Below, piece by piece: positions 521 through 25,400 of a stretch of 64,000 nt of DNA. Each line of letters starts with the position of its first letter. Positions within the stretch are counted from its first letter, which is position 1. The notes beneath the pieces are model-generated. The model had not been told where the DNA came from. It was given only the letters and a program-made list of their open reading frames with translations, and did no database searches. Made by a program: the position numbers and the translations under genes. The stretch spans positions 1,540,097 to 1,604,096 of the forward strand of contig CAJFCJ010000008.1 in assembly GCA_904063045.1 (NCBI GenBank), read 5' to 3'. The stretch comes from Dimorphilus gyrociliatus. Its lineage: Eukaryota > Animalia > Annelida.

Positions 521-2449
521 TTAATCTGATTTTTGTTCGCGTCTTATAAATTTGGCTTTGTAAGGCGAAGACACTACCACTCCCATGAAAAGGAACTTTC
601 TTGCATCGTATTCCGGTAATTTATTTTCCTTTTCGGGTTCTACTTTATAATTTTGTATAATGCCTGTTATAAATAGAAACAGTCGATTCTTAGCCATTGG
701 TTTTGCTAAACAAATTCTCCTTCCAGCTCCGAAAGGTAGAAGGCTGTTTGTTTTTAAAAAAAATGAGTAGCAAATCTATTTACTAGTAGAGTATCTCAAA
801 TTCTTACTGCTTCCTCAAGTAATGACCGGTGTCTACTACTTTTCCTTCTTCATTTAAAAATCGCTCGGGTCGGAAATTCCAGGGATCGCCCCAAATTTCT
901 TCATCATGATGGAGACCCCAAATATTGGGCCATATCTACTTGACAAAAATTTAAAAGTGTATGGTTAGCATATTATATAATAAACCTGTGTGCCTTTTTT
1001 AAGCTGATAGCCGTCTAAATCCATGTCACGGTCAGTTTCGTGAGGTAAGGCGAATGGTACGACAGTTGTGTATCTGAGTAATTCTAAAACACAAGCTTCC
1101 GAATACGGCATATTTTTTTTATCTTCAAGACAAGGCATTCTAGAATGTCCGACAGCTTCACTAACTTCTTGAAAAATCCTTTTCTCTATTTGAGGGTGAT
1201 TAAGCAGTATTGGCAAAAAATTATACATTGAAGACGATGTCGTGGAAAATCCTGTATCGTATTTGTTTAGCTATAAATTTTGTATATTGTTATAATGGAT
1301 CCTTACCAGCTAAAATTATTGATTGAAGTGTCTTACAGAAGGAAGCCCGGCTATATTGAAAAGACGATTTCATTAATTGAGAATACATACTATCTATTGC
1401 ACCAGAAATCTCATCCTTGTTTTTTTCATCTTGATTCATTAGCTAGAGAAGCGATAATAAATTACAAACTAAACAAAAACTGAGGGAGAGCAAGGAGCTA
1501 GAACAAATAATTAAAGAACACTTACAAATCGCTGATCGATAACTTTATTCCAAAATGCGCAAACATTTCTTTCATAATCGCAAATTTTTTTATATGCTTT
1601 ATATCCGAAATATTTTAACCAAGGAAAAAGTTCCAAAAGCAGTGCCTTGGAGCCAAATGTAACTTCAACAAACTGTATACTCATTTTGGTTATTTGTGAA
1701 ATCTCTTCTTCACTCAGCTCTTGATTTAAAAGCTGCGTAATATACATTTCTCTAATTTTAAAATATATTTTTTAAAAGGTGTATATTTACCATGGAATAG
1801 ACTATGTCTGCTAATAAGTATTGTATCTTGTCATTTATATCTACAGCCTTGCCATTAGCATTTGACAAATATGTAAAAAATTTATTTATAGATCTCATTG
1901 TCAATGATTCCACTGTCTCCATTCCATCGCCATAGTGTTTAAAAGACTTTAAACAAATTTTTTTTAGCTCTCTAAACTTTTCATCGTCATTCATTGCAGT
2001 AATACCGGGTTCTTTCTTATATAATATACCTAACCTGTTAGATAAATATCTCGAAGAAAATCCGTCTTGTTTCGTTACAAAGACCTCGTGAATTAATTTT
2101 AGCCCAGAAACCAAAACAATGTCTGAACCCATTAGGTTAAAACGACACAAGTTGCCGTATTTCCTGGCGTAATTTGCCAATTCTAGATGCATCTTCTCCT
2201 TTTTTATACTAAAAGCTATGCCGACGAGGGGTAAGCCCTTAGGTCCTGGTATTCTTTTACCACCTTTGAACTTTTCTAATAAAAAATAAGCCACCAAAAG
2301 ACTAATCAAAGATATAGTTAGCTTTATTGAAAGATCGATGGATAACCATTTCAAGAAGCTACAATTGAATATTGAAAAAAGTAGAATTAATTAGACGAAG
2401 TAATATTCATATAAGAAATCATAAAAGCTCACTCATTAAACACAATCAT
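521..2449 (-). CDS. Cytochrome P450, clan 2 (CYP17/CYP21/CYP1-like), 7 coding exons, 514 aa
   Basis: Exons 2449-2433, 2358-1791, 1732-1526, 1442-1307, 1251-986, 935-808 and 743-521 join in frame through GT-AG introns of 50-83 nt (1545 nt total). Motifs: N-terminal TM anchor plus [11 protein letters not shown]-helix LAGFSTT, K-helix ELLR, PERF, heme motif [10 protein letters not shown]. Confidence 0.95.
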
Positions 2450-3224
2450 TTCGCACAATAATTGATGCACTGAAATTGTACAAGGTGTAAACCTTGTCCT
2501 AAATATCACTGAGAGTACATATATCAGATAAAGACTATTCAATACTACATCCTCATATGACTTTTAAATTATTCAAGCGTATCAATACGAAAATGCTAAT
2601 CGGGGGCAAATTACAATTATGGTAATATCCCTGAAACCAAAAAAATAAAATATGCTATTTAAAATAGCAACGAAAATAGACGAATTAATATGCATATAGC
2701 AGAAATACTTTGAAATTTTTTCGACATTAAAAGTAGGCTATAAATATTGATAAGTAGTTAATATGAACTATTCCTCTTGTTAATTTTTGTGAATATTGTC
2801 AATTATTTGTCGCACATAAAAGTAGAACAAAGACTGAGAGAAAAGGGACGCACGTATACATTTGTCAATTATTCTTTTGCTACAAATGTTTCGCTTGTCG
2901 AGATAATATATTTAAAAGTAGGTATTTCTCAAAGGAAAAGATCCCAAAAGCAAATTACTGAAATGTTTTTATTATTATAGCTAGTGACCATGACGATCAT
3001 TTTCTAAGAAAATGGAAATAGAATATCACATTAAACTAACATACATGCATATAATAATAACTATTATAAATAAGCGTGTTTACCTAAAAAGTATACATCA
3101 TAGAATATATTTGCTATTGTGGCTGAAAACCCTAATAACTCAGGATTATTTGTTAGCTGCATTATAAAAAAATGTTGTAAAAAGGTGAATAGGTATTAAT
3201 TAAAAAATGTTTAACTTTTAATAG

Positions 3225-5791
3225 CACTCGAACAAGCATGCCAGACTGCAAGTAAAAAATGCTGGACTGCCTGCTGTGACTGGAAATCGTCGCCTCCGCC
3301 TAAAATCGATAAACGACAGATAGTAGTTTGCACTCAACCCTTAAAAAGATCAGACTCTGAGAATAGTTTAGCCGTATCTTCGCCAAGAGATAAAGATCGT
3401 CGGGGTTCTAGTTCATCTCATGGTAGCGATGCCACACTTAACTCATTTTCCTATAGGCGCTCATCAGTAACACCAGTTATTGACATGAAACCTATAGAAT
3501 TTTGGGCCAATAGAGAGACAGTACAACCTCGTACACCTAGAAGGGGTAGACTACCAAGCGAACCTGAGTTTTCCATCGATAGCATCAAGCCAGATTTATA
3601 CGAAGTGAAGGAAGAGGTTAAAAAGGTCCAACCAGATTTAGGGGAAGTTCATGTAAGCCTGCAGTATGAAGTTCCTGCAAATGCCTTAGTTGTTAGAATA
3701 ATAGAGGCTAGACATTTGCCTTTACCTGCGTCTATGGACAGAGCTGATCAAGCTCATAGTAATCCATATGCAAAACTATACGTTCTACCAGATACGAAAA
3801 ATGCACAACAGACTGGAGTTCAAAGAAAAACCCAAGATCCAAAATGGGGCGATACATTTACTTTTGAAATGTCATTTCAGGATGCTCAAAAGGGAACTCT
3901 GCATATATCTGTTAGAGATTTTGATAAGTTTTCGAGACATTGCGTAATTGGTCATGTAAATCTGCCCTTGGATTCAATGAATTTGCTTAAGGGTGGCCAT
4001 TTGTGGAAAGCTTTGATTCCAAGCCATTTGGTAAGCTTATTTCTTTAATATATTAGTATAATATTTTTGCAGGCTCCAGTAATAAAAACATGAAGTTTCT
4101 ACAAATCGGTGTAGAAATAAAATTACTCTTAGCAGTTGTTGGGAATTATCATTAGAAAGGCTATAAAAATAGCTACAAAGGAATAAAAAGAGGTAAGGGA
4201 AGAGATAGTATAAGGGAAAAGAGCAAGCTAGTGATGGAGAAAAGGTAGTGAATATAAAAAAATATGTTTTTTTAAAAGAGCAAAATATTAAAGAACAAAT
4301 CAAAGATTTTTTAAAAGTTCTTCAAGCAGCCAAATTAAAAAGTATTTGATTAAGAAAAAGTTACGTCTTTTAACCTAAAAGATACTAAATTTTGTAGTTC
4401 CCGTTACCTAAACCTATATTGTTAAATGTGTACTTTTTATTACTTTGCAAAACCTCTAGGCTTCGTGGCCATATATCAATTGACGAGGGGAAAACAATTA
4501 ACGAATAACAAAGTACTTCCGTTCCCTGGTGATTAACTGTGATAAAAAGACATCTTGGCTTAATTCAAAATTTCTTACTGAAGTGTCACATATATTATAC
4601 ATACAAATGAGAGTACTACACAAATGAATATATATAGTATACATACTTATAGACTACAGTTTATTTATATAAGTTCAGAGTATCCCTTGCTATTTAATAA
4701 ATACTGCATAATGAAATTATTTCAGATCATCTTATATCCAAATAATAAATTTACATGCAATTCATCTAATAATAATTCATTGAATATATTTATCTTTTAA
4801 CAAAAGCATAAATGAATCATATTTGTCTCAACTATAACTATACAATATAATTGAAATTACTTTTTTGCTTTTATTTAACTACTAAAAATTTCTTTTTAAT
4901 AAAGTTAGAAAGGAGAGTATTGAATTTATACAGTTAAGGAATGAAACAGAAAGAGAGAACGCTGTGCTGTTCTAGTAATAGGAAACCTAAGAGTTCTCTC
5001 TAGTTCTTATACCTCCATCGCAGCATCATTTTAAATTATATATAAAAAGAAAAGCAATATAAAGTGTTCAGTGTTACTTTTGCTACACATGTGAGAATTC
5101 AGTTAACTGATGCCTATATTTATACAGTATATATACAGTATATAAATTTATACAGTGTATACTAATATATATACATATTACACACACGTAAATTTTACTG
5201 TATATATATACAGTAAATATATATATATTATACTTGAATACCCCTTTAAAACTGATTTTCGTCATTATTTCCGATAAATTAATTATTAATTATGAATAAT
5301 TCTTGATTTATCAGGATAAACCGGACATTGGGGAGCTATTACTCTCATTGTTATATATTCCAAGTGCTGGTAGATTGAGCATCGACGTTATAAAGGCCAA
5401 ACAACTTCTACAGACGGATTTAGTTGGTGGATCGGATCCTTTTGTAAAAATTACTTTGCTTAATCATGAAAAACCAGTAAAAACCAAAAAAACATCTATG
5501 ATAAAGAATACGATAGATCCAGTTTTTAACGAGAATATTACATTTACAGTCGGACCGGAATCAATAGACTCAACGAGCCTAGTGATTACAGTATGGGATT
5601 ATAATAGTAAAAGTAAGGATGATTTGGTTGGTAGAATTGTAATTGGAAAACATTCAAATAGTGGAAGAGCTGAAGGAGCTCATTGGAATAAGATGATGCA
5701 ATGTCAAAGGCAACCTGTGGCCCAATGGCATTCCCTACATCCTAAGGAGATCTGCGATCGATCTGCTCCAATCTCAGCAACTATTTTATGA
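3225..5791 (+). CDS. SYT17: Synaptotagmin-17 (B/K protein) ortholog; no TM segment, Cys-rich N-terminus, two C2 domains. Start-codon exon not resolved
   Basis: Exon 3225-4030 (acceptor ttttaatag, donor TTG|gtaagc) and exon 5315-5791 (tcag|GAT...TGA). Contains stretches I recall as SYT17-specific: IDMKPIEF, AHSNPY, DFDKFSRHCVIG, KGGHLWKALIPS, GELLLSLLYIPSAGRL, AKQLLQTD, QWHSL..CDR..P. Confidence 0.92.
5194..5217. repeat. 24-bp perfect palindrome TTTACTGTATATATATACAGTAAA in the SYT17 intron
   Basis: Read directly; the sequence equals its own reverse complement. Confidence 0.9.
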
Positions 5792-8563
5792 GAAAAAACA
5801 AAACTGCTTATAACTTTAATTGTTGTATATAAATACTAAAAGAAAAGAAGATAGTTTGTCAGTTAGAATGAAAGAAAGAAAGAAATGAGTACCATAAGAT
5901 GGAGAAGAACCAGTTTTACATATGATTATTTACTTTGTCGTCTAAGTGAACTTTAAAATACTTATGTAAATTTCACTTGACGTGCCTGTATAATGAACCC
6001 AAGTGGATATGATAACATAAAGTTTATATATATATTGTATAATTGGTTAATAAATGTTTTGTCAACACAATAGACAAGTGAAAACCACTTGGCAATTAGT
6101 GTGGTTTTGAAGATTTAATTGTGAAAAAAGAAGCAAAATTGAGTTAAAATAATTTCTATGTTTGATTATTATAATTTAAAAAATTTTCTGTTTATGTCCT
6201 GTTATATATTATGTTATAAATTGATAAATGAGTTAATTAACTTCGAATATGGAACCTGCAGGAACACTTCTGAAACAAGAAAATATTGAGTTTTTTCTTC
6301 TCTTTGCACAATTATTATTAAAAATGTAATTTACAGATATGAATGTTCCCCAATACGTATTTGTCAAATTTCAATGTTCAAATGATAGATAATGAAAAAG
6401 ATGTTTATCTAAATCGATGTTTTATCTGTTCGTTATAAAGTTTCCTATAATATACCTATGTCACGAAAACTGATAATGAAAACGGACTATTGTATCAGAC
6501 AAGGCAATTCGCTGTTGCATATAAATTTGTTTCTATAGTAACAAACTTAATTAGACACCTTATCTGCTTGATGACTCTTAGTTTTAGCAAGTATTATAGT
6601 ACGATAAGGGGTTTCTCGTTTCTCTCTCCCTCGCTCTACCACTTTTTTTCAGAGTCTTCCTTCTCCACATTCTGAAGAAAATTCGTTTCACACTTCTGAA
6701 CTCTCTTTAAAAATTACTGTACGTCTTAGAATAAGTTCCTATAGTAATAATGAGAAAAAACCCATTATTACCTTATATATTATTTAATTTTAATGAATAA
6801 ATATATACTGTATAATAAAAAGAAAAGAGAATGCAAGATATGATTTTTCTTATCTACTTTTCCCGCTATTATAAGTTTGCGTGAAAGTGCAATCCCTTTC
6901 CTTCTTCTCTTGATTATTCTCTGTGTTAATTAAGGAGATTATATTTTTTATCCAGTTTAAATACTTTATAAAAGGAATAATAATAAGATATTAGATGTTA
7001 CGCACTCGTTAAATTTTTAAAATAAAATCACTAGATAGCCATTCAAACCAATAATTCTTAATAAATAATTTATTAGATTAAATAGTGCATTGTTTTAATA
7101 TTGAACCCTTACAAGTATTTCTAAAAAAAGTGACAAAGGCGCCATCTTTTGGTTTTTTTCTGTTTAAAATTCTACGCATTCAAAAAACAGATGTTAAAAC
7201 TTATAGTTTTTTTGTTAGCAATAAACTGCTAATTATAATAAAGATGAATATTTTTTTCCTTCAGCTGTATTTTAAGAAGTTGTGTTTTCTTTCTTAATCA
7301 AAGTAAAATATTACTATTGAACTACTATTGATTAGTGTAGGAAAATATCGATTTATTTATAGTATTAATTATTGAAGACAGTGAATCAATAATAACTGGT
7401 ACGACAAAATTGAACTTTATGTAAATGTTAGCAAAAACAAAGAAGGGAAACAATAGATTATTTTCGCTTAGAGCTGACATCTTAAACGATAAAAGAAGAG
7501 AGTTTATACATGCATATGTGTGTGATAGAGGGAGAGAGACATAGAGAAGGTAGAAAATGACTGTCATTCAATGATTATTAACAAAAAAGTGTCTTTATTT
7601 TCTCTAAAAAGAAAACTTAATTCCTGCTATTCATACTTCTTTTGTCCTCTAATTTTTCATTTCTTCTTAAATTCTTTTTTTTTAAATGCCTAGTTTAAAA
7701 ACTAAATTGATATTTCATAGTATATTGTATTGAAATGTGCATACATTTTATATACTCTATATGTAGTGACAATGTTCTTTGCTGCTTTTGATCATATATG
7801 AGCTTAGTTTCTTAAGTAATATTTTAACAAAATTTTCTTTCTCTTGGATAAATTTACTTAAAAATCTTATAGAAGCTAATCTTTAATGTAAATTATATGT
7901 CTATTTGGACAATTAACAAATATTGCATTATACTAATAGCAATTAGTCAGTGTCATTGTTTGTCTGAAATAGAGAGGGTAAAAGCCCCAAAAGATCTTTA
8001 CAAAAACAAATAAAGTATGATATTTAAGAGATTAAAACAGTCGATTACTAAGAAGCCGAAAAGGATAAATGAATTAGCAATACATTAGAAGTAATAAAAG
8101 AGAGAATATATGAAAGAGAGTGGGTGACAATATCATGAAATGAATAATATTTTCTTCCGTTAGAACTAAACTGATGAATAAAAGATAAACTATAAAGCGG
8201 GAAATTATAATTATAGAAATGTATGGATTAATTTACTGGAACATTTTTAGAACACAACTTAGAGTATATTACCAAGTGTTAATTAAGACCGTGGATCTGG
8301 TGAAATCTCTCAATAATTAACTTGAAAGTTACAATGGCCTTGCAATGATTTTATACTTTTCCAGTACACATGGCGATATACATGCTAATTAAGTGAGCAA
8401 AATATAATGAAATATATTGAAAATAATATAGTAAAAGCATGTACTGTATCATATTTCAGTAAATACCATATGTCACTTTACTAAGATTAATACTTAAGTA
8501 ACATTTCAGATGCATAACTCAATTCAAATTCAAAATTAAATTATCTAAGTTTTGTTTAGTATC

Positions 8564-9708
8564 TTAGTTTTTTAACGTATATTTTATTTTCATAGTTGCC
8601 GATGTATAGCTGTTGTAGGAAATTTTAATTTCATCTCCGATTAACGTATCGCATTTGCGGTCAAATTCTCCATGCCAGAAGTATCCATTGTAACAATATC
8701 CATATGAGAGTGTGTAGTCAACAAATTTATATCCAGCTTTAATGGGACCGTCACCCACACCACCTATCTCATACTGGGTTTTAGAGTTACCGATTGAAAA
8801 GTTGTCCACTACGTAGGTTTTCACTTCACCATTTGTGTCGGTTACAGTTGTGAAAAGAGTTGCTTTATAAAGGGAATTGGACATAGTGAGTTGACTCATT
8901 TTTTCTAAACCTAACCAAAAATCTTTTTCCAAATTTCCGAAACCATCCACATAATTTGTATACGTTTTACTCCAAAAATAACTATTTGTATTTTTGGTTC
9001 TTCTCATGAAGACAGTCCAAGATGCTAATTTATCAGATAAATCACAATATACCAATATCTTATCCATTATTTCAACTTGATATAGACTTTTTAACTCCGT
9101 TTTAACATGTTTATTATCTAGCAAAATAATTAAAAAGAAAATTTTAAAGATCTCCTACAATAATGAGCAAATAAACAATATTTTACCTTTTATTTTCGTT
9201 TTTACTAAAAAGCCAGCGGATTTTATTGGAGCTATTTCATAAATACCGCTTTTGGTATTCTTAGTCTTACTAACATCTTGACAATCTGTCAATATTTTTT
9301 TGCAATTGTAATAGTTTATTTATATACTATTAAAAACTTTTTTTTAAATTACAATGTACTAACTAGCATATAGAATATGAAATTTTCCGTTCTTTGCGCA
9401 AGTACTGTTACAGTCGAAGGAAAGTTGAGGTTTATTTAGATTTGGTACTGTTTTTATTAAATCAGTGACCTCCTTCTCTAAATCTTTTATGGTTTTTGTC
9501 AAATTTTCATATTTCTGAATACTTTTTTTAATGAGAAAAAGTTTGTTTCAAGAAACAGAAAACAAATATGGTTTACTTACAAATTATCTGAGCACTTCTT
9601 GATAAGATTTCTTTTGGGAAAGATAAAACTATAGGTGCATGTTTCTGTAGAATAAACACCTTCTTTAACGAAAATTATTAAAAATGTAATTATCAAAATT
9701 TTATACAT
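8564..9708 (-). CDS. Secreted angiopoietin-like fibrinogen-related domain (FReD) protein, 4 exons, 312 aa
   Basis: Exons 9708-9581, 9521-9364, 9285-9187 and 9117-8564 are phase-compatible (939 nt). Signal peptide MYKILIITFLIIFVKEGVYS, angiopoietin-type CTYSFIFP motif, short coiled coil, then FReD motifs DCQD, SGIYEI, VYCD, WTVFMRR, YVDGFG, DFWLGLEKM. Confidence 0.87.
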
Positions 9709-11771
9709 GACTTTCCAATGTCAACTATATCTTTTAAAGCTAATAACTAACATTGAAATTGTAATTGAATAAGAAATTATACTATTATTTCTACTTATTG
9801 GATATCACCTTACTCTTTAAATATGAAAACTAATTGATATTTGACAAAGGCACTCGGCGATATTGAATTATGATCGAGAATTTCTAAGTATTTAATTATA
9901 ATTAACACGCTGATATTTAAAACATTTATGAGAATATTTCCTGAAAGTCACCTTCTTTTACTGGCAAGGAGATTTTTTAAAAATCTTCTTAGAAAAATTA
10001 TTCATATATTGGAATTTTACGCTAAATCTTAAGGATTATAAGTTAATCTAGTTTTATTCTGATTACAACAAAAGAGATAAACCTTGGTGATCTATTGAAC
10101 CGTCAGTTTTTGAGGAATGAAGCTTAATCTGTTTATAAGATATAACCTATTTTTAGAGCTTGCTTATCAGTTGTTTAGAGGATGATAATCCATAGAATCA
10201 CTTACTCTAAAATACCAATATGAGTATAATGTATATTGAAAATAAAAGATAATGTGGTTTTTATGTTATATACAGTACACATATAAAAATTATCTTGTAT
10301 ATAAATATATACTGTATATTAGTATATTAATTTATATACTATATATTATATTTGTATATAAATTTGTAGTTTTCGTATGAAGTATGTGGCTTATTACAAA
10401 CTAATACGATTGAAAGGCAGGAGAGAGTTACACTATACAATGTCTTAAATTAATGATCAGTAGCTCTTAGAAAGAAACAGATACTCATCACTCAATAAAA
10501 TGTTAACCACAAATGTCCAACTTTCCGCTACATTAATTAGCCTACTTACTCTGAACTCAATAAACTACAAGACAAACGGAAAATTGTTGTATTTAAAATA
10601 TGAGGGACATAAATACATGACAATTAGTATGAATGAGAGTGGATAGAGGTAAGCTAATAAAGGCAAATAAACTGAGTCGTCTAAGATGATTATCCCAAGA
10701 AACGACTGACTGTGAACTCTACTAGAGAAACATGAAAAATCGCGTGAGACATAAAAAGAAAAGAATAACTATTTAATATATACAGTAGATTCATTGTATG
10801 AATATGAGTATGAACAAATGTATGTGACATAGAATTTTTACTTTTTTATAAATTAGGAAAATGTCTTTATAAGAAAACGTGTTTCATCAAGTTAGTCATG
10901 TCTTTTTAATATGTTTGAATAATTATGCACGATAGAGATTGGTCATCATTAAGATACCCTAAACTCATTTAGCTTGATCCATTTCCTATGAGGGTTGAAT
11001 TGAAAAATAACGTTGACTACTCATATGATAACACAAATATTATATATAAAATTTACTTTTCATGAAAAATTTCATATAGAAAAAAGGGAAGAACATGTTA
11101 CAGCGTCATTAGAGTCAGTAATTTCTTTTATTTATCACGCAGTATTTGACATCGAAACAATAATTTATTCGTTTCTCACGTAAATTATATAGAAATCTGC
11201 TTCTTTCTTTCAAATTTTCCTTAATTAAAGAAATCTTTTTCAGGAAAAAGAGTCATATCTTAGTAAAAGAGATTTAGATGATTCTGGCAATTATAAACTT
11301 TGAAAATCTAAGGGAAAAGCCTAATACATGTCTTCAATTTAAAATAATAAGCTTTTCTTAGCATTTGTTTTCAACTTTCGTTTTATATGTATTCATATTT
11401 AATATTTATTAATATATATATTCTGAAGTGTAAAGTAATACAGTGTCTACACTGCAGTTTCTGTCAATTTCTTAAGAATCAATCAAAGAGCCCAAGATGC
11501 TTTATTTAAGCATAGTTGCAAGGTGTCTTTTTACGAGAGCTTTCAAACTTTTACCTCACGATAATTCTATATACATCAGTTTCAATATATCTTTAATAGA
11601 ATAAAAATAAAACACTGAAAATTTCCCTAGAGCGCACTGTGAATGTTAAGACTTTTACATTTAAAATCCAGCATTCATTGTTAAGTTAACCTGCACTGTG
11701 CGCGTTAGGGAAATTATCAGTCTGCTTTAACTTTGATGATCTTATCTCTTTTTTAATTGAAACTGGGAATT

Positions 11772-12159
11772 ATGTTCAAAATTCTAACGTGTCTGGCTTC
11801 GATTTATATGATTTGTTATTTAGAGGCTTTTACTTTTCGAAGGAATTTTGAAAAAGGTCAGTTTCTTATTATTGTGAATTTTTCGCATTTAATTTTTTAC
11901 AGCTCTTCTCGTATATTCTTTCTTTCTTTTTATATATTCTGTAGATGAGAATGATGATCAAACGTGGAAGAGGATATTTCAAATAACAAAACTTTGTTCG
12001 AATGGGGGCAATCCTTCTCTTTGTAAACTTTATAGGGAAAGACGAAGTTCTAGTATAAGTTGTAGACCAAATATTTCTCGACTACAATGCTATGATGAGT
12101 ATATTGCTAGGATTTTTAGTAAGCCCAGAGACAAGGTTCGGATTGTGGGAAAACGTTAG
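11772..12159 (+). CDS. Candidate neuropeptide/peptide-hormone precursor, 2 exons, 99 aa; the ORF track shows only exon 1 read through into the intron
   Basis: Exon 11772-11856 (donor AAAG|gtcagt), 88-nt intron with long pyrimidine tract (ttctgtag|), exon 11945-12159. Protein: MFKILTCLASIYMICYLEAFTFRRNFEKDENDDQTWKRIFQITKLCSNGGNPSLCKLYRERRSSSISCRPNISRLQCYDEYIARIFSKPRDKVRIVGKR*. It has a signal peptide, KR and RERR sites, and a terminal GKR. Confidence 0.78.
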
Positions 12160-17668: not shown

Positions 17669-17848
17669 GTAAGTTTCATATGCATGTTCATTTGTTTATT
17701 AACTTTCGGATCTATAAGTTGGTAAGTGTATAGCATAGATATCCAAAATACGAGTATTAGAGTGTTTTTATGATTTGTTGTATTGTATATTTGGCATATT
17801 TTCCATATTACATATATAAATATTCAAGTACATATATAATTTATACAG

Positions 17849-17887
<39 letters not shown>

Positions 17888-18119
17888 GCACATATATATA
17901 ACATACGACAAGGCATATATATATTCATGTACATGTATATTTCTCGAAGTAGATCTTCAGTACACTGTGAGAAGCACGTTTGTATGCAGTATACATAGCT
18001 TTATATATCCTATATGAACTATTCATACTTCTAATTTATAAGTCTACAAGAAAATAAACGAACATGTACAAAAATAAATCCTTTTGTTCTATATAAATTT
18101 AGCACATGTAAATAAGCGA

Positions 18120-18122
<3 letters not shown>

Positions 18123-18164
<42 letters not shown>
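18123..18164. repeat. (TA)n microsatellite; similar runs near 12850, 17861, 18266, 22344 and 48371
   Basis: About 21 TA units read directly. Confidence 0.95.
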
Positions 18165-18168
<4 letters not shown>

Positions 18169-18565
18169 TAGACACTGAATATGTAACAGATATTCTTATG
18201 ATAAAACAACACCCATATTTTATAAAAGAAATTGTTCATGAACACCTACCAGCTGATTTATGTATTATATATATATATATATATATATATTCGTAGAATA
18301 TCATGTCTAGTATTCTGTTTTTAAACTGCATAGTTATTATATCTATCTAAATATACATAGGCGTTTTAAATGCTTAATCTTCATTAAATTTTGGCGTAAT
18401 ACTAATTATTAGGAAAATGACACCCGTTGAGTAATTTAAGGTTTCTATCGAAGAAAATTTTACGAGTTATTCTAGACCACATGAAAGGCAAAAAGTAGAA
18501 AATATTCTTTCACAGAAAGCTAGCTCAACAACAATGCTTTTCAAAGATCATCAGCTATGTAATTT

Positions 18566-18579: not shown

Positions 18580-21067
18580 GACCTTTGAACTATAAGACGG
18601 AATAATTGTAATTTCACCGACGATCGCAAACAAACCCTGTCTTATTATTTAATGAATGACAGAATTACATGAAGAAAAAGCAAATCGGTGATAAAGTCTG
18701 AGTGTTGCTTTTTTATTGATTAGTTAGCTGTCTGTTTTAAGGTTGTAAGAAACTGTAGAAATTGTTTCAATGGTTAATCCTGATAACGACGTTAGACGAC
18801 AATTAATTAGTTTCTAAACAATATACTGACAATAAATAATCGAAAAAGACCAGTAGATATCGAATTTTGATCTGTCATTGTTTAACAGCTGTCATTAATT
18901 TTCTTCGAATATTTTTAGTATTAAGAGATCTCGAAAAGCGCCAAAAAATGCATCTATGTACATTTACATTTTCTAAGTAATTTCTCTTCCAATCGAAATT
19001 TATTTGTAGCCTTTTCTTTACAAGGTTAAGGTCTGCTTTAGCCTTTGGGTTTACAAATATCAATTGCAGATCAATTAATAGATCATTATTTTAACCTTAT
19101 AAACTCTATATACGTTTACTAAACCATTATGAATTAAAGTAATTTTTGAGTATATTACTCTTGGTAAATCATAAGAATTATTTATTACTTCTTTTAAGCT
19201 ATAAGCTTTCTTTTCATCTTTTTTATGCTTTCTCTTTTTACCTTTACTAACTTCGTCTATCGACCTTCCATCATCATGGAATTGAATACAGCCGATTTAA
19301 AATGAATATATGAGAGAGAGAGAGAGAATGTGTTTGCAAGAATAATAGAAAAGTACAGTGACAGAAGGTAAAAAAAAGGGAAATTAAAAAAATTGATTAA
19401 AATTAAAAGAAAAATGAATAAAATGGCTATCTGACGAAAAAGAAATAAAAGCAAAGAAATTAATTACAGAAAAACGATAAATTACATGAATAATTGAATA
19501 ATCTTTGGAACTGTATCATTTAACTTTTGGCAAACTGTGAAGGCTCTACACGATTTTTTCATTAAAGCTGCACATTTTTTCTTTTTCTTTGGTTATTATG
19601 AAATTAAACTAACTTTTTATCTCTACTTTCACTCCCATGTTGTCTGTCTTCATCTCCCTTTAAAATTCGTTTGCCCCCTCATCTACCTACCTCTTCCGTC
19701 CCTCTCCTCCCCTCTCTCTATATTGTCTAATTTTTATATCTCTTTCTGCATTTTACTTTCAATTGAATTAAGAAATTTTCTTTATAAAAAAAAGTAATTG
19801 AATTTAAAATCAAATTATCTATTCGGGACACAGCCGAAAGAAATTTGCGAAATTTGTTGGACTTTTTACGGTTGTTTATTTTGATTTAAGCCTCTTTTCG
19901 ATATAAAAATTCCAATTTACTTCTGTAGATTTCATTCTCCATTAACTTTAAAGAGAAACAAAAAATGCCTATTTAAAACTGTAATTGGCTTCCCTGTAAT
20001 CTAGTCAGTGCTCGAGCCATCGGTATACATATATTATAATACAATAAAGCATCTACGAATTGATTACTTTTCATGAATACTTCATGCAATCCATCTTTAT
20101 GGATATTTTCGACCTTTCATTTCATTTACGGAGGAAGTTAATTTGTTTCGAGCGGTTGCTTGCAATGAAATTTCCTATCAGTAAAAATAAAAATGTAAGC
20201 AATGAAGTTTTACGATGGTAAGACCTCAGATTTTTAAGACCGATAGAATGTAAACAAATGTAAAAAATATGTGAAAAAAAATTCTTGGAATAGTTTTTTT
20301 GCTTCTAACTAAATTTTCTTCCTGTTTCTCATCATTATCATTTTGCGTGCCTAGAATCCGATTGCATTTACACATTTACCGTCATAAAAATGAATTGCAC
20401 CATTTAGATGTTAGGAAAATCGCTTTTTAGCGTTACTCAAGATATTTTGAAATGATGGCTCAATATTTGAGATAATACATTCAAATCGATAAATCCGAGA
20501 ATGGAATAAATAGAATAAAAAGGCCTATTTCAAAAGAGACAATGATAATACTCGACTTGTTCCAGAAAGGAAGGAGAATTAATCGATAAAAGCCTTAATA
20601 TCTTGGGAAAATATTGTTTTTATTAAGGAATTTAGTAGATAAAGTAATATTCTGTTGGTGTGTGGGCGGTTGGTTTACGACTGCTGATATTTTGTAAACT
20701 CTAGAGAATACAGAATACAACTAAATACGATCAGAAAAAGATATATCAGGGATTTACGTGATCATTGCTCCCATAAACTCTTAAAGGGTTAGGATAAATG
20801 AAAAATATTCGCGCCAATAGACGTCTAAAAAACCGTTTAGAAGCTACAGAAGATTTTTGCCTAACACAAAATAATTCCACTTAATTAAGTTGTCCGGAAA
20901 AAGCCTATTGATTTTTCTTCTATTGCAGAAATTTTCCAGTTTCTTTCCCCTTCTATCTTTTTATTTGTTTTAATTTGTTTCTATCTTTTTTACTACTTAG
21001 AATAAAAACTTGTACTAATTAACTTGGCATTTGTAAACTTTAACGTGTCTTTTTGTGCACAGTTATC

Positions 21068-21916
21068 ATGCCGGGAGACGCCCGTAGGAAACGGTTTTTA
21101 TACCAGCGTTCTCAGACGTTGCCGGCGGAAGATGCTGGTGAATCTCTATTAGAAAGGGGAGAGGAAAAAGAATTGAGAAAACCTAGTGGCAGTATAAGAC
21201 GAACGCAATTTAAGCAGAGGAGATCAATAACGTTGAGTGAGGCGCCTGTTTTGAGGCCAAATGATTCTCAAAGGACATCTTCCAGGACTACACCAACCGA
21301 ACTCTTTCATAAAATGAGGGACAAAATTCAACAAAAATTATTCCAGACCGAATGGCCTAATGCTGCCGTAATAGTAGAAGATCGACGGCAAAGGGCATTA
21401 GAGGCCCTTGAGGCCTCAATAGGAGCGCAGGAGACGCCACAAACTAGTAAAAAGGAATTAATTTGGGAAAAAATCGAATTGAAGGAAGTTTCAGCCCTGA
21501 CCGGTGCTAAATACAAATATTCGCCAACAAAGGTACCAAAATCAGACCTACCTAGACCAAAATCTTGTTCAGAAGACCCTCGGCCTAAAATGTCACAATC
21601 GAAATCCGATTTTCAACCGTCCACATCATCGAGCTCTCCAATCGAACAAAGAGAAATAATTCTCGATGCTAAAGCCCAGGCAAGGCTTCAGAGTGAAAAA
21701 TCTATCCCAGATGTCGTGTTTGATGATCATGGTCAAACATGGGATGTTTACGGGGCAGAATTTGATCCCGAAATCCTAGGTCAAGCTATACAAAATCACT
21801 TACGAGAATTAATGAACGGAAAAGAGGAGAAAAAACAAGAAAGATCGAGGTCTCAAGGCTTTTGGTTCAAGCTGTTTTGCTTGTTCCGGCAGACACCCGA
21901 AGAGGCGTCTGCTTAA
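21068..21916 (+). CDS. GPRIN (G-protein-regulated inducer of neurite outgrowth) family protein, single coding exon, 282 aa
   Basis: C-terminal PDVVFDDHGQTWDVYGAEFDPEILGQAIQNHL matches the GRIN_C signature (WDE.G.TWEVYGA...EVLG.AIQKHL). ATG at 21068 lies just after an acceptor site. Confidence 0.88.
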   Translation: MPGDARRKRFLYQRSQTLPAEDAGESLLERGEEKELRKPSGSIRRTQFKQRRSITLSEAPVLRPNDSQRTSSRTTPTELFHKMRDKIQQKLFQTEWPNAAVIVEDRRQRALEALEASIGAQETPQTSKKELIWEKIELKEVSALTGAKYKYSPTKVPKSDLPRPKSCSEDPRPKMSQSKSDFQPSTSSSSPIEQREIILDAKAQARLQSEKSIPDVVFDDHGQTWDVYGAEFDPEILGQAIQNHLRELMNGKEEKKQERSRSQGFWFKLFCLFRQTPEEASA

Positions 21917-22420
21917 CTTATTAGAGAAAAATATCCTATTCGTAAAAGCAAAAACGAAATGCTCTAAAACTGAATTTGCATCTTGGATTTTTGTGTTAAT
22001 AAAATATACCTACACATCTGGGAACTTATTCGCCTACTCTGTTTTCATATCTCTTACATGGATTAATTAGTTAATTATTGAAGAGAAAAATGAAAATCTC
22101 TCAAATGAGCCACAGATTAGCCATAGAACGAAAAAAAACACGACAAAAAAATACATATATAAGATTTCTGGAATCACCTTTTAACAGAAAATGATAAGTT
22201 TAATATTAATAGGACGAAATACAATCTGGAAATTCTGCTCCTTGTACTATTCAGTAGCACTTTAAGGGATTAATGATCAATAATGAAGCAAACAAATGAA
22301 GGAAAGAAGGGGAATGGCAGGGTGAAGTGTAAGGAAAAATTACATATATATATATATATATATATATACACTGTATATAGTTTTAATGTAATATGTACTA
22401 CATGCTAATACATATGTATA

Positions 22421-22489
22421 TATAATTATATATACTGTATATATATAATTATATATACTGTATATATATAATTATATATACGGTATATA
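22421..22489. repeat. Tandem repeat, 3 x 23 nt (TATAATTATATATACTGTATATA)
   Basis: Units start at 22421, 22444 and 22467; the third has one T>G change. Confidence 0.9.
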
Positions 22490-25400
22490 TATATATATAC
22501 ATATATATACAAAGTGTATGTAGGGAGAAAGATTGAGGGAATGTAGGCGAAAGAAATAAAACGTGCACGAAAGTTAAATATTGGGAAAACAGTAGAAAAT
22601 TTATTTGTTTCAAGTATTCTGCTTTCTTATTTGTATTCTACAAATTAAAACTAGTTGAATTTGAGAAACAATTTCTCCTACTTTTAGATAAATAGTCGCA
22701 TAAAAAATATATACATTAAAAAAGCTAAATTTGCAGAAAAAACCAATTGGGAGAGGTATCGAACAATAAATTTCTACTATCGGGCTGCTGTTAGTCGTAA
22801 AAGATGTTGATGATAGCAGCTTTGACATATCTAGGTCAAACAGTATGCCACATTCTTGAAAATGGTCATATCATCTCAGTGTAATTAAAAATGACATCTA
22901 ATTTGCACATTTAAAGGATACAGAGTAATAAAGATGAATATAATACGAAAGAATACTTATCGTAAATACAGTGTATAAAAGTGTATGAAATTTGTGTGCA
23001 TACGTCTATAGACATTGTATGCCTGCTACCTTTTTATACAAAGCTCACGATATCTATACGAATCCGAAACAATTGGCATTTCTATTCGATATATCGATAA
23101 TGTGACCACTGATGCACGTTCAATACGTACTATTTTTTAAGTGATACGTTAATTATATCTCTTTCTCTCCATCCATCTTACTCTCTCTTCCTTATATTTT
23201 CTATCACTCTACCTTTCTACTCCCTATAATTTTGCTGCATATTTCTCAGAGCATTTAAAATGACATTTTCCTATTTTGGGAAGAAGTAATTTGATAGTAT
23301 GATGTTTTTTTTAACATAAAAGAAGGGAACTTTCGATTTATATAAGTATATTGTGTTTTCATTGTTTTTGCCTTTTTGGGCTCATCGTGATTATAAAACA
23401 GAAACTCCATATAGATTTATTATTGTTTATCCGGTATATATAGTAATATATACTTATTGTAAGTTGTATTGTATATTTCATATAAAGAAAATTTGTTAAA
23501 TTTTACAAAATTCCAAAGAAAAATATTTACATCGATATTTTTTTATTTGATATGCTATTTTCACTTTCAATATAAACAATAAATATGACAATTTTTTATA
23601 GTAGACCGGTATTTTTCATATACAGTACATTTACAATGTACGCACGAATTTTTTCTATATAGATTTTTTATCTATATAATGTACTGCATTAGTTTGTATC
23701 ATTTATATACCCACTATCTTTTTTAGATGAACCTTTTTAGTGCTTCTAAAAAAATCCGATTAGCCATCAGAAAAAATCTAGTTGGGGAAGCTTTTTCCAT
23801 CTGTATTGTTTAAAAACTGAATCAGGAAAGAATTAGTTAAAAAGAAACGTGATGTGTCAACTAATTTTAATTGACAGAACACTTTGTAAAGGTTTTAGTT
23901 AATATACTTAATACCCACTGTCTCACATAAAAATCCACACACGTACACACTGATACATGCACAGATATAAGCACATAGACATTATTTAGAAATACGTATG
24001 CTTTTGCTTATATAGCTTCACTGTATAAAAAAGAGAATAGAGGTATATCTAAACCGGAAAAGTATAATTTAATATTTCATGTGAATATTAGCGTAAATAG
24101 TTTATTACACTTGATTTGTAATTTATTAAACTTTTACACGATTATTTTTTAGTTTAGTGATTTTAGAGAGGAGAGAGAAATCGACAAAATAAAAATAAAA
24201 TATGACGGTGAAGGGATATGTGCTGCCCTTAATAAAAACCTTGTAAGGAGAAATTACGGCTTCATTAAATTTAATCTATGTTGCTTCTATGAGTAAAAAA
24301 TAGACGAACTGAAGAGGGTAGTATGAAATTAAATACTTTAATACAAAAGACAGAATGAGGAGGAAAAATTTTCCCTTTTTTTAAGTTCATAATTAATATC
24401 AACACCAGACGAACTCGAAGCGTGTTAATTAATTCTTTCCTTTCCTTTCTTTTTCTTTTTTCTTTTCCAGTTACAAATGATGTTTCTTCTCTGTTTTAAT
24501 GACAGATTAATTTTGCCAGTTTAATCAAGGTTGATAGTGTGTAAAAGGCTCATCTTTTATGCACGTGTCTGCTTCATCAGCTACCGGCAGATAATTAAAA
24601 ATATTTAATTAAGTAACTTCTTATTTGTTATTTTTCTTTATCTAGAGGAAATGAAAAAAATAAGAAATTATGTAATAACAATAGTTAGTAAAACTGGAAG
24701 TTTTATTGGCAATCTGTTGTTGAGTGATATCGATAATACTATTTTTAAACGTTACTATTTATCTAAAGATTTTATATATATACTGTATATATTACATTAC
24801 ATATGTGCTGTATATTACTACTAACAGCTGGACTTAGTGTATACAGAATCCCAGTTGATTACGCTTAATACTAATGAAGTCTGATATTAAGCTCTTAATT
24901 AAATTACCTAACTATTATTGTTGATCAAGAAAGACTAATATCATCTAGTTTCCAAGTTCTTAATATAAATCAATCAATCAATCAATCCATAACAGTAACA
25001 TATAATAAAAATTATCTATACAACTGAAAAGCATTGTAAATATCACAAAGTCTCTATTATAGTCAAAATTATGAAACATTGTTGCAACAAAACTAGTAGC
25101 ATGTGGGATAATTTATTTTTCTCTTAGTTTATAAAGTATGGTTGATTAGAAGAGAACATCGATATTTTACAAAGGAAATAACTGTCTATTATAGCTCCGG
25201 GTCATAATGCAAAAAAGTAAAGATAGCTTTTGTCGGGGGAAATGTATTTTAACTTTCGATACACCACAGACGAATATTTAAGTGATTTTATTGGTGAGAA
25301 TACCAGCTACAACTAGCCGCCAACCATCTTTACCAATGGGGAATAAAACTACTTTAAAGGAAAGAAAAGAAAGGAGTATACAGTAACAAGAAAAACTGCT

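Follow-up and report, generated by a model that had tools for sequence, protein, structure and literature searches.

A disulfide ring closed by two cysteines with eight residues between them (C-x8-C) is known from MCH, a deuterostome family in which the ring is located at the C-terminal end of the precursor and the peptide is non-amidated and has no long tail. In peptides of the calcitonin/CGRP/amylin type (Pfam PF00214), an N-terminal disulfide ring is followed by a helix and a C-terminal amide, all within 32-37 aa. A terminal G-K-R and multi-copy precursors with KR-flanked units are typical of neuropeptides, and a signal-peptide exon followed by a phase-1 intron is a common layout among secreted proteins. 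All elevenins, which are protostome peptides, have exactly 8 residues separating their two cysteines, and the conserved residues of Aplysia elevenin are D5, F11, P13, R16 and G17 (PMC10175484). The EP/CCHamide (GGNG) peptides are known in annelids, including dinophilids, and EP occurs as a single copy right after the signal peptide; its ring contains an aromatic residue and in many cases also His, and its amide is preceded by GG or GA (PMC6617912).

Here we analysed a 64-kb stretch of Dimorphilus gyrociliatus DNA, the whole of which is called the window below, and found a locus that is likely to be an unannotated gene for a small secreted prohormone, releasing ring peptides, one of them probably amidated, with a predicted signalling role. 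It shares with EP/CCHamide the two cysteines and a predicted amidated C-terminus. However, its two peptides begin 19 and 43 residues past the predicted signal-peptide cut, the ring of peptide 2 contains neither an aromatic residue nor His, and no GG or GA follows the second cysteine.

Gene structure and genomic context

Splicing from position 11856 to position 11945 joins two exons (11772-11856 and 11945-12159) into a reading frame of 99 aa, which is exactly the protein proposed in the initial annotation (Table 1). The frame opens with the ATG at 11772, preceded at a distance of five codons by an in-frame TAA (11754-11756). The donor reads AAG/GTCAGT after 11856 and the acceptor reads TTCTGTAG/AT before 11945, with a pyrimidine run and TAG preceding exon 2, and together they delimit a canonical GT..AG intron. 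The N-terminus has a hydrophobic core whose 12-aa Kyte-Doolittle maximum (mean over the core) is 2.25. The ring interior of peptide 2 is RPNISRLQ, and its predicted C-terminus is R-I-V-amide. No canonical AATAAA was found downstream of the stop codon in the window.

There is also an alternative in-frame AG at 11901-11902, inside the intron, whose use would add 14 hydrophobic residues, as the initial annotation had pointed out. The extra 42 nt fall in sequence that is unconserved in the ortholog described below, which argues against this acceptor.

The DNA around the locus has about 27% GC and the stretch is gene-poor. A median intron of 66 bp and a strong GC bias are reported for the D. gyrociliatus genome (PMC7854359), and the short intron and strong base-composition bias of this locus are compatible with these figures. 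The motif C-x8-C-[FYLM]-[DEN]-x-[YH] has a single occurrence across all six frames of the 64-kb window; therefore, the window contains no tandem paralog. Neighbouring coding features with Pfam matches are included in Table 1; otherwise, no ORF of 90 aa or more occurs from 9.1 to 21 kb, a distance of about 12 kb. TA-rich microsatellite-like stretches (about 17800-18200 and 22300-22520) give YIYIYI translations, which lead to spurious low-complexity protein matches.

Table 1. Features of the locus and its neighbourhood, in window coordinates
Feature	Position	Strand	Remarks
Conserved upstream block	11672-11771	+	Alignment to ortholog, z = 11 relative to shuffles
Exon 1, coding part	11772-11856	+	Start codon, predicted signal peptide, then FTFRR..EK; ends one base into codon 29
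Predicted signal peptide	11772-11828 (residues 1-19)	+	Hydrophobic N-terminus
Intron, 88 nt, phase 1	11857-11944	+	GT 11857-58, AG 11943-44
Start of exon 2, acidic spacer to W-K-R	11945-11973	+	KR convertase site (predicted) 11968-11973; WKR invariant in both species
Peptide 1, 20 aa, C-x8-C ring, non-amidated	11974-12033	+	From sequence and ortholog comparison
RERR, furin-type cleavage site (predicted)	12034-12045	+	Identical in ortholog through synonymous changes
Peptide 2, 34 aa, C-x8-C ring, then Y-D-E-Y-I and predicted helix	12046-12147	+	Cys codons at 12061 and 12088
G-K-R amidation/convertase signal (predicted) and stop	12148-12159	+	GKR 12148-12156, kept in ortholog, paralog and last unit of P0002 and P0005; TAG 12157-12159
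Tandem-C2 gene, synaptotagmin/rabphilin-like	exons 3485-4048, 5303-5791	+	One C2 domain each, Pfam E 1e-21 and 2e-23; upstream of the putative prohormone gene
ORF with fibrinogen C-terminal domain	8564-9124	-	Pfam E 4e-17
Long ORF with GRIN_C domain (G protein-regulated inducer of neurite outgrowth)	21053-21916	+	Pfam E 2.4e-16

Ortholog and selective constraint

A word-indexed search with the exon-2 product against 5.8 billion protein clusters returned P0001 as the sole relative, with 69% identity; the window gene's own product was absent from this collection, and no transcript-derived protein of it was found there either. P0001 sits on three identical genomic Logan contigs (L001-L003). It turned out that L001 holds the complete orthologous gene of a related species, in which the ATG context is the same, the N-terminus is signal-like and AFTFRR is conserved. 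Its donor, GTGAGT, leaves one codon base, its intron is 164 nt long, and its acceptor is at the equivalent position, after which exon 2 runs in the order WKR, first C-x8-C, CKLY-RERR, second C-x8-C and GKR. The ortholog thus retains the start codon, the position and phase of the intron, KR, RERR, GKR and all four cysteines, and the layout set out in the initial annotation (signal peptide, acidic spacer, KR, RERR, G-K-R-stop and two C-x8-C pairs) is conserved in it.

In the Nei-Gojobori comparison of the window gene with the ortholog, pS is 0.74 (saturated) and pN is 0.20, which corresponds to a dN/dS of 0.07 or lower, and the differences at codon positions 1, 2 and 3 number 23, 19 and 51. For the stretch from RERR through peptide 2 to GKR, pN is 0.11 and pS is again saturated. 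When the segments were aligned to L001 and scored against shuffles, z was 13.5 for exon 1, 57 for exon 2 and 11 for the upstream 100 bp, while the intron (-0.5) and the 3' flank (about 0) stayed at chance level. Because conservation on the coding side is confined to the exons, pS is saturated with a low pN, and intron position and phase are conserved, the locus is, judged from this comparison, a functional protein-coding gene in the frame and across the intron given above, and it is under strong purifying selection.

The two peptides differ in their constraint. Across the ring of peptide 2, 15 consecutive residues are identical in the ortholog. Peptide 1 has a dN/dS of about 0.5, and its rate of evolution is roughly fivefold that of peptide 2; its ring spacing and CKLY tail are kept, with a changed ring interior. 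Since the 15 identical residues persist despite saturated synonymous divergence, and dN/dS is about 0.5 for peptide 1, peptide 2 is probably the constrained, bioactive product, and peptide 1 is a family unit that has probably degenerated.

Two further conserved stretches were observed. Directly after the predicted signal-peptide cut stands FTFRR, then an aromatic residue and Glu (residues 20-25; 11829-11846), which is also conserved in L001. Possible roles of this motif are those of a sorting signal, an additional cleavage site or a small peptide; cleavage at RR within it would release only a tripeptide. In 11672-11771, the blocks shared with the ortholog are CACTGT, TTGTTAAnTTnAC, CGTTAGGnAAATTA, TTTAAC, ATGAT and CTGGGA, all conserved despite the saturated synonymous divergence. 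This upstream region is probably core promoter or 5' UTR, and its blocks are candidate elements of such a promoter or 5' UTR in a gene with cell-type-specific activity.

Paralog and multi-copy relatives

From the two orthologs we built a profile for an exhaustive HMMER search, with no word filter, against 1.84 billion representative proteins, and four proteins passed: P0001, P0004, P0002 and P0003. P0004 (94 aa; E 2.7e-6) was regarded as a paralog because one sample (SRR23372228) contains both it and P0001; the source runs of both are Logan SRR23372215/216/228/231. Its gene, contained in contig L004, consists of a signal-peptide exon and one other exon, separated by a 163-nt phase-1 intron at the same position as in the window gene. 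The encoded precursor includes a 35-aa peptide that shares the ring-plus-YDEY core and the GKR end with peptide 2, and the first cysteine pair of this precursor is C-x4-C instead of C-x8-C. After GKR, P0004 has an extra short C-x7-C peptide (FDC...GCLRKP; L004 4923-4965), which the window gene does not contain.

P0002 (773 aa) was matched in 14 stretches, with an E-value that is inflated by repetition, as the spurious P0003 obtained 1.7e-10 in the same search. P0003 was rejected as a relative, for it has no cysteine ring and owes its score to four identical tandem repeats. Two relatives of P0002 were found, P0005 and P0006, and these precursors are about 770 aa long with about 20 units (sources of P0002, P0005 and P0006: ENA ERZ27279858, Logan SRR30853453 and ENA ERZ25070167, respectively). 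The cysteine pairs found in a scan of the three precursors are C-x8-C without exception (51 of 51). Each unit contains exactly two cysteines, mostly between dibasic sites; most units have KR-type flanks and continue after the ring with [FL]-D-[RKQ]-Y-[IV]. In P0002 and P0005 the last unit ends with V-GKR, in P0006 with V-GRR, and the spacing between the ring and this end is close to that of peptide 2.

For the link between the window gene and these precursors, a reverse HMM built from the multi-copy units only scored the window protein at 14.5 bits, against a maximum of 11.3 in 2000 shuffles. In BLASTP, peptide 2 matched successive units in a single register (best E 4e-5), and P0004 likewise aligned to the multi-copy units in a consistent register. 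In terms of sequence similarity, the homology of the window gene to P0001 and P0004 is certain, and its homology to the multi-copy precursors, a link that rests on short motifs, is probable. The family can be written as [dibasic]-x(4-6)-C-x8-C-[FYLM]-[DE]-x-Y-[IV], or more widely with [IVFML] at the last position, a pattern that the window gene contains. It also has the gene layout of the family, in which a signal-peptide exon and a phase-1 intron precede one exon with all peptides, as found in the window, L001, L004 and L007, the last of which shows that the multi-copy gene starts in the same way.

In L007 (3.2x coverage), the multi-copy homolog at 1655-3821 is split into overlapping ORFs (1655-2458 and 2319-3821), which reflects either a frameshift from an assembly error or a real disruption. 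Besides, this contig contains tRNA-like SINE sequence near 330-420 and a repeated element with similar ORFs at 4893-5285 and 7501-7773. Scans of metagenome contigs with the family alignment and with P0005 gave no match.

Search for named families

The database searches used the exon-2 product rather than the full 99-aa protein. At E<=1, Pfam gave no family for it, including Pro-MCH, calcitonin, NPY and CRF, and no relevant family was obtained from Pfam for P0001, P0004 or P0002. The NCBIfam models returned nothing relevant, and no hormone chain was matched among PDB sequences. In the ESM Atlas, the exon-2 product had only sub-threshold TSP1-like noise and P0005 had no match. The peptide strings and run accessions retrieved no relevant paper from the text of 8.4 million papers, and no family-type strings were found in the sequence supplements to studies of Platynereis, of nemerteans/brachiopods/phoronids, of molluscs and of D. 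gyrociliatus. A few 4-mer matches in the Platynereis secretome belonged to unrelated proteins and were discarded. In the sources searched, none of the relatives (P0001, P0002, P0004-P0006) has a name, and the peptide family as a whole seems to have none there.

The initial annotation had suggested a possibly undescribed neuropeptide system. This holds in that no already named neuropeptide family was found in Pfam, NCBIfam, PDB sequences, the Atlas or paper text, but the gene is not isolated: it belongs to an unnamed family with a paralog and, in other animals, precursors of about 20 copies.

Proposed processing and structure of the peptides

The features by which neuropeptide precursors are generally recognised, i.e. 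a signal peptide, conserved mono- or dibasic cleavage sites and an amidation signal, are found here in sequence and conservation. From them we infer secretion, cleavage, amidation, ring formation and a signalling (neuro)peptide role, with the cleavage and amidation calls resting on motif rules. Exon 1 would supply the signal peptide, and exon 2 the acidic spacer and the two cysteine-ring peptides. The signal peptide would be removed co-translationally near residue 19, and each C-x8-C ring would close by a disulfide in the ER. Prohormone convertases or furin are then expected to cut at KR, RERR and GKR, after which carboxypeptidase E would trim the ends and PAM would turn the terminal Gly into an amide on Val96.

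The predicted main product is a 34-residue Val-amide with a monoisotopic mass of 3996.09 Da, in which a 10-membered-residue disulfide ring would cap a short helix, and it would most likely act as an extracellular signal on a receptor. The 20-residue ring peptide (2196.11 Da) may be a fast-evolving by-product or a second ligand.

We ran AF2 on a family alignment of 21 sequences with a 41-aa segment. In the model (mean pLDDT 70), a helix covers residues 16-28 with pLDDT 80-85, running from inside the ring (RLQC) through YDEYIARIF, so that the disulfide would staple the loop onto the first helical turn. The hydrophobic moment of peptide 2 is 0.56, a value exceeded by 6.5% of shuffles, so its amphipathic tendency is weak. 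Foldseek with the 41-aa model gave no match.

Alternative explanations

An ORF produced by chance together with fortuitous splice sites might be expected in an AT-rich genome (about 27% GC), and the locus is indeed unannotated. This explanation is effectively refuted by the dN/dS of 0.07 or lower with saturated dS, by the conserved phase and position of the intron, by the restriction of coding-side conservation to the exons, and by the paralog and the wider family. Rather unlikely is a secreted and convertase-processed peptide of non-neural cells with a role other than that of a neuropeptide, for example in defence (antimicrobial), in reproduction, in a gland or as a pheromone. The cationic charge of peptide 2 goes together with the amphipathic tendency given above, furin-type sites such as RERR also serve the constitutive pathway, and peptide 1 evolves fast, all of which would suit such a product. 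However, defence peptides usually diversify, whereas peptide 2 is under strong constraint, and the terminal G-K-R and the roughly 20 mostly KR-flanked copies in the relatives are typical of neuropeptide precursors. A signalling prohormone is therefore the reading that we retain.

Two further alternatives concern the rings themselves. The initial annotation had left a choice between two ring peptides and a disulfide-linked two-chain hormone, in which interchain disulfides would keep the peptides together once RERR has been cut. The four cysteines conserved with the ortholog and the RERR between the two pairs speak for it. Yet the multi-copy units have two cysteines each, mostly between dibasic sites, which means that the ring closes within the unit; the paralog has a first pair of the C-x4-C type and a further C-x7-C after GKR, so that chain 1 would be without a conserved partner geometry; and the evolutionary rates of the two peptides are about fivefold apart, that of peptide 1 being the higher. 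Ring peptides are thus favoured, and the two-chain form is most improbable. It is likewise very unlikely that the gene is a strongly diverged form of elevenin (protostomes) or MCH (deuterostomes), the named C-x8-C families. The exact eight-residue spacing speaks for such a membership, being found in both peptides, in their orthologous copies and in all pairs of the relatives (51 of 51), and peptide 1, with 20 residues and no amidation, is similar to Aplysia elevenin. But the Asp before the first cysteine, the Phe at ring position 5, the Pro at ring position 7 and the Arg-Gly after the second cysteine are absent: peptide 1 reads L-C...C-K-L, peptide 2 reads S-C-R-P...C-Y-D, and C-R-G occurs in none of the 51 units of the relatives, from which the conserved elevenin residues are missing as well. 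Peptide 2 also has a 19-residue amidated tail, where elevenin has none, and the relatives are multi-copy, unlike elevenin. With MCH, only the ring size is common, and no Pro-MCH match was obtained from Pfam. The view of the initial annotation that elevenin and MCH do not match beyond the C-x8-C ring is thereby borne out.

Significance and comparison with known systems

In annelids and other spiralians, the known set of neuropeptides is considered almost complete, yet a ligand is still missing for many orphan GPCRs. If the reading as a prohormone is true, a conserved and unannotated precursor of an unnamed family would represent a new ligand family for orphan GPCRs, and short intron-split peptide genes like this one would be systematically missed by standard annotation. 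A broader reading may be put forward, although we consider it doubtful on balance: the gene might be a reduced, one-to-two-copy form of an unrecognised animal neuropeptide family, marked by C-x8-C and a helix start of the type [FY]-D-x-Y-[IV], with about 20 copies ancestrally and an orphan receptor of its own, and this family might be an ancient sister of the elevenin/MCH rings. With one or two copies here and about 20 elsewhere, it would exemplify the reduction of a precursor.

Compared with the multi-copy relatives, the window gene agrees in the Pro that occupies ring position 2, in a hydrophobic residue located two positions before the second cysteine, in an aromatic residue or Leu followed by D/E, x, Y and [IV] after this cysteine, and in the dibasic flanks. 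It differs from them in having one conserved unit and one probably degenerate unit, not about 20, and in the ring interior, which is RPNISRLQ in the window gene and xPGEDxxx in the relatives.

Among the named systems, peptide 2 is similar to the calcitonin type in its length of 34 aa and in its build of ring, helix and predicted amide, the ring and helix being those of the AF2 model; this is a resemblance of design only, since the ring has 8 residues rather than 4-5, five residues stand before the ring, and there is no Pro-amide. It also differs from NPY/NPF, as it ends with R-I-V-amide and not with RxRF/Y-amide. In conclusion, the locus probably represents a new peptide family within a well-known kind of system, a novelty that is real but not categorical.
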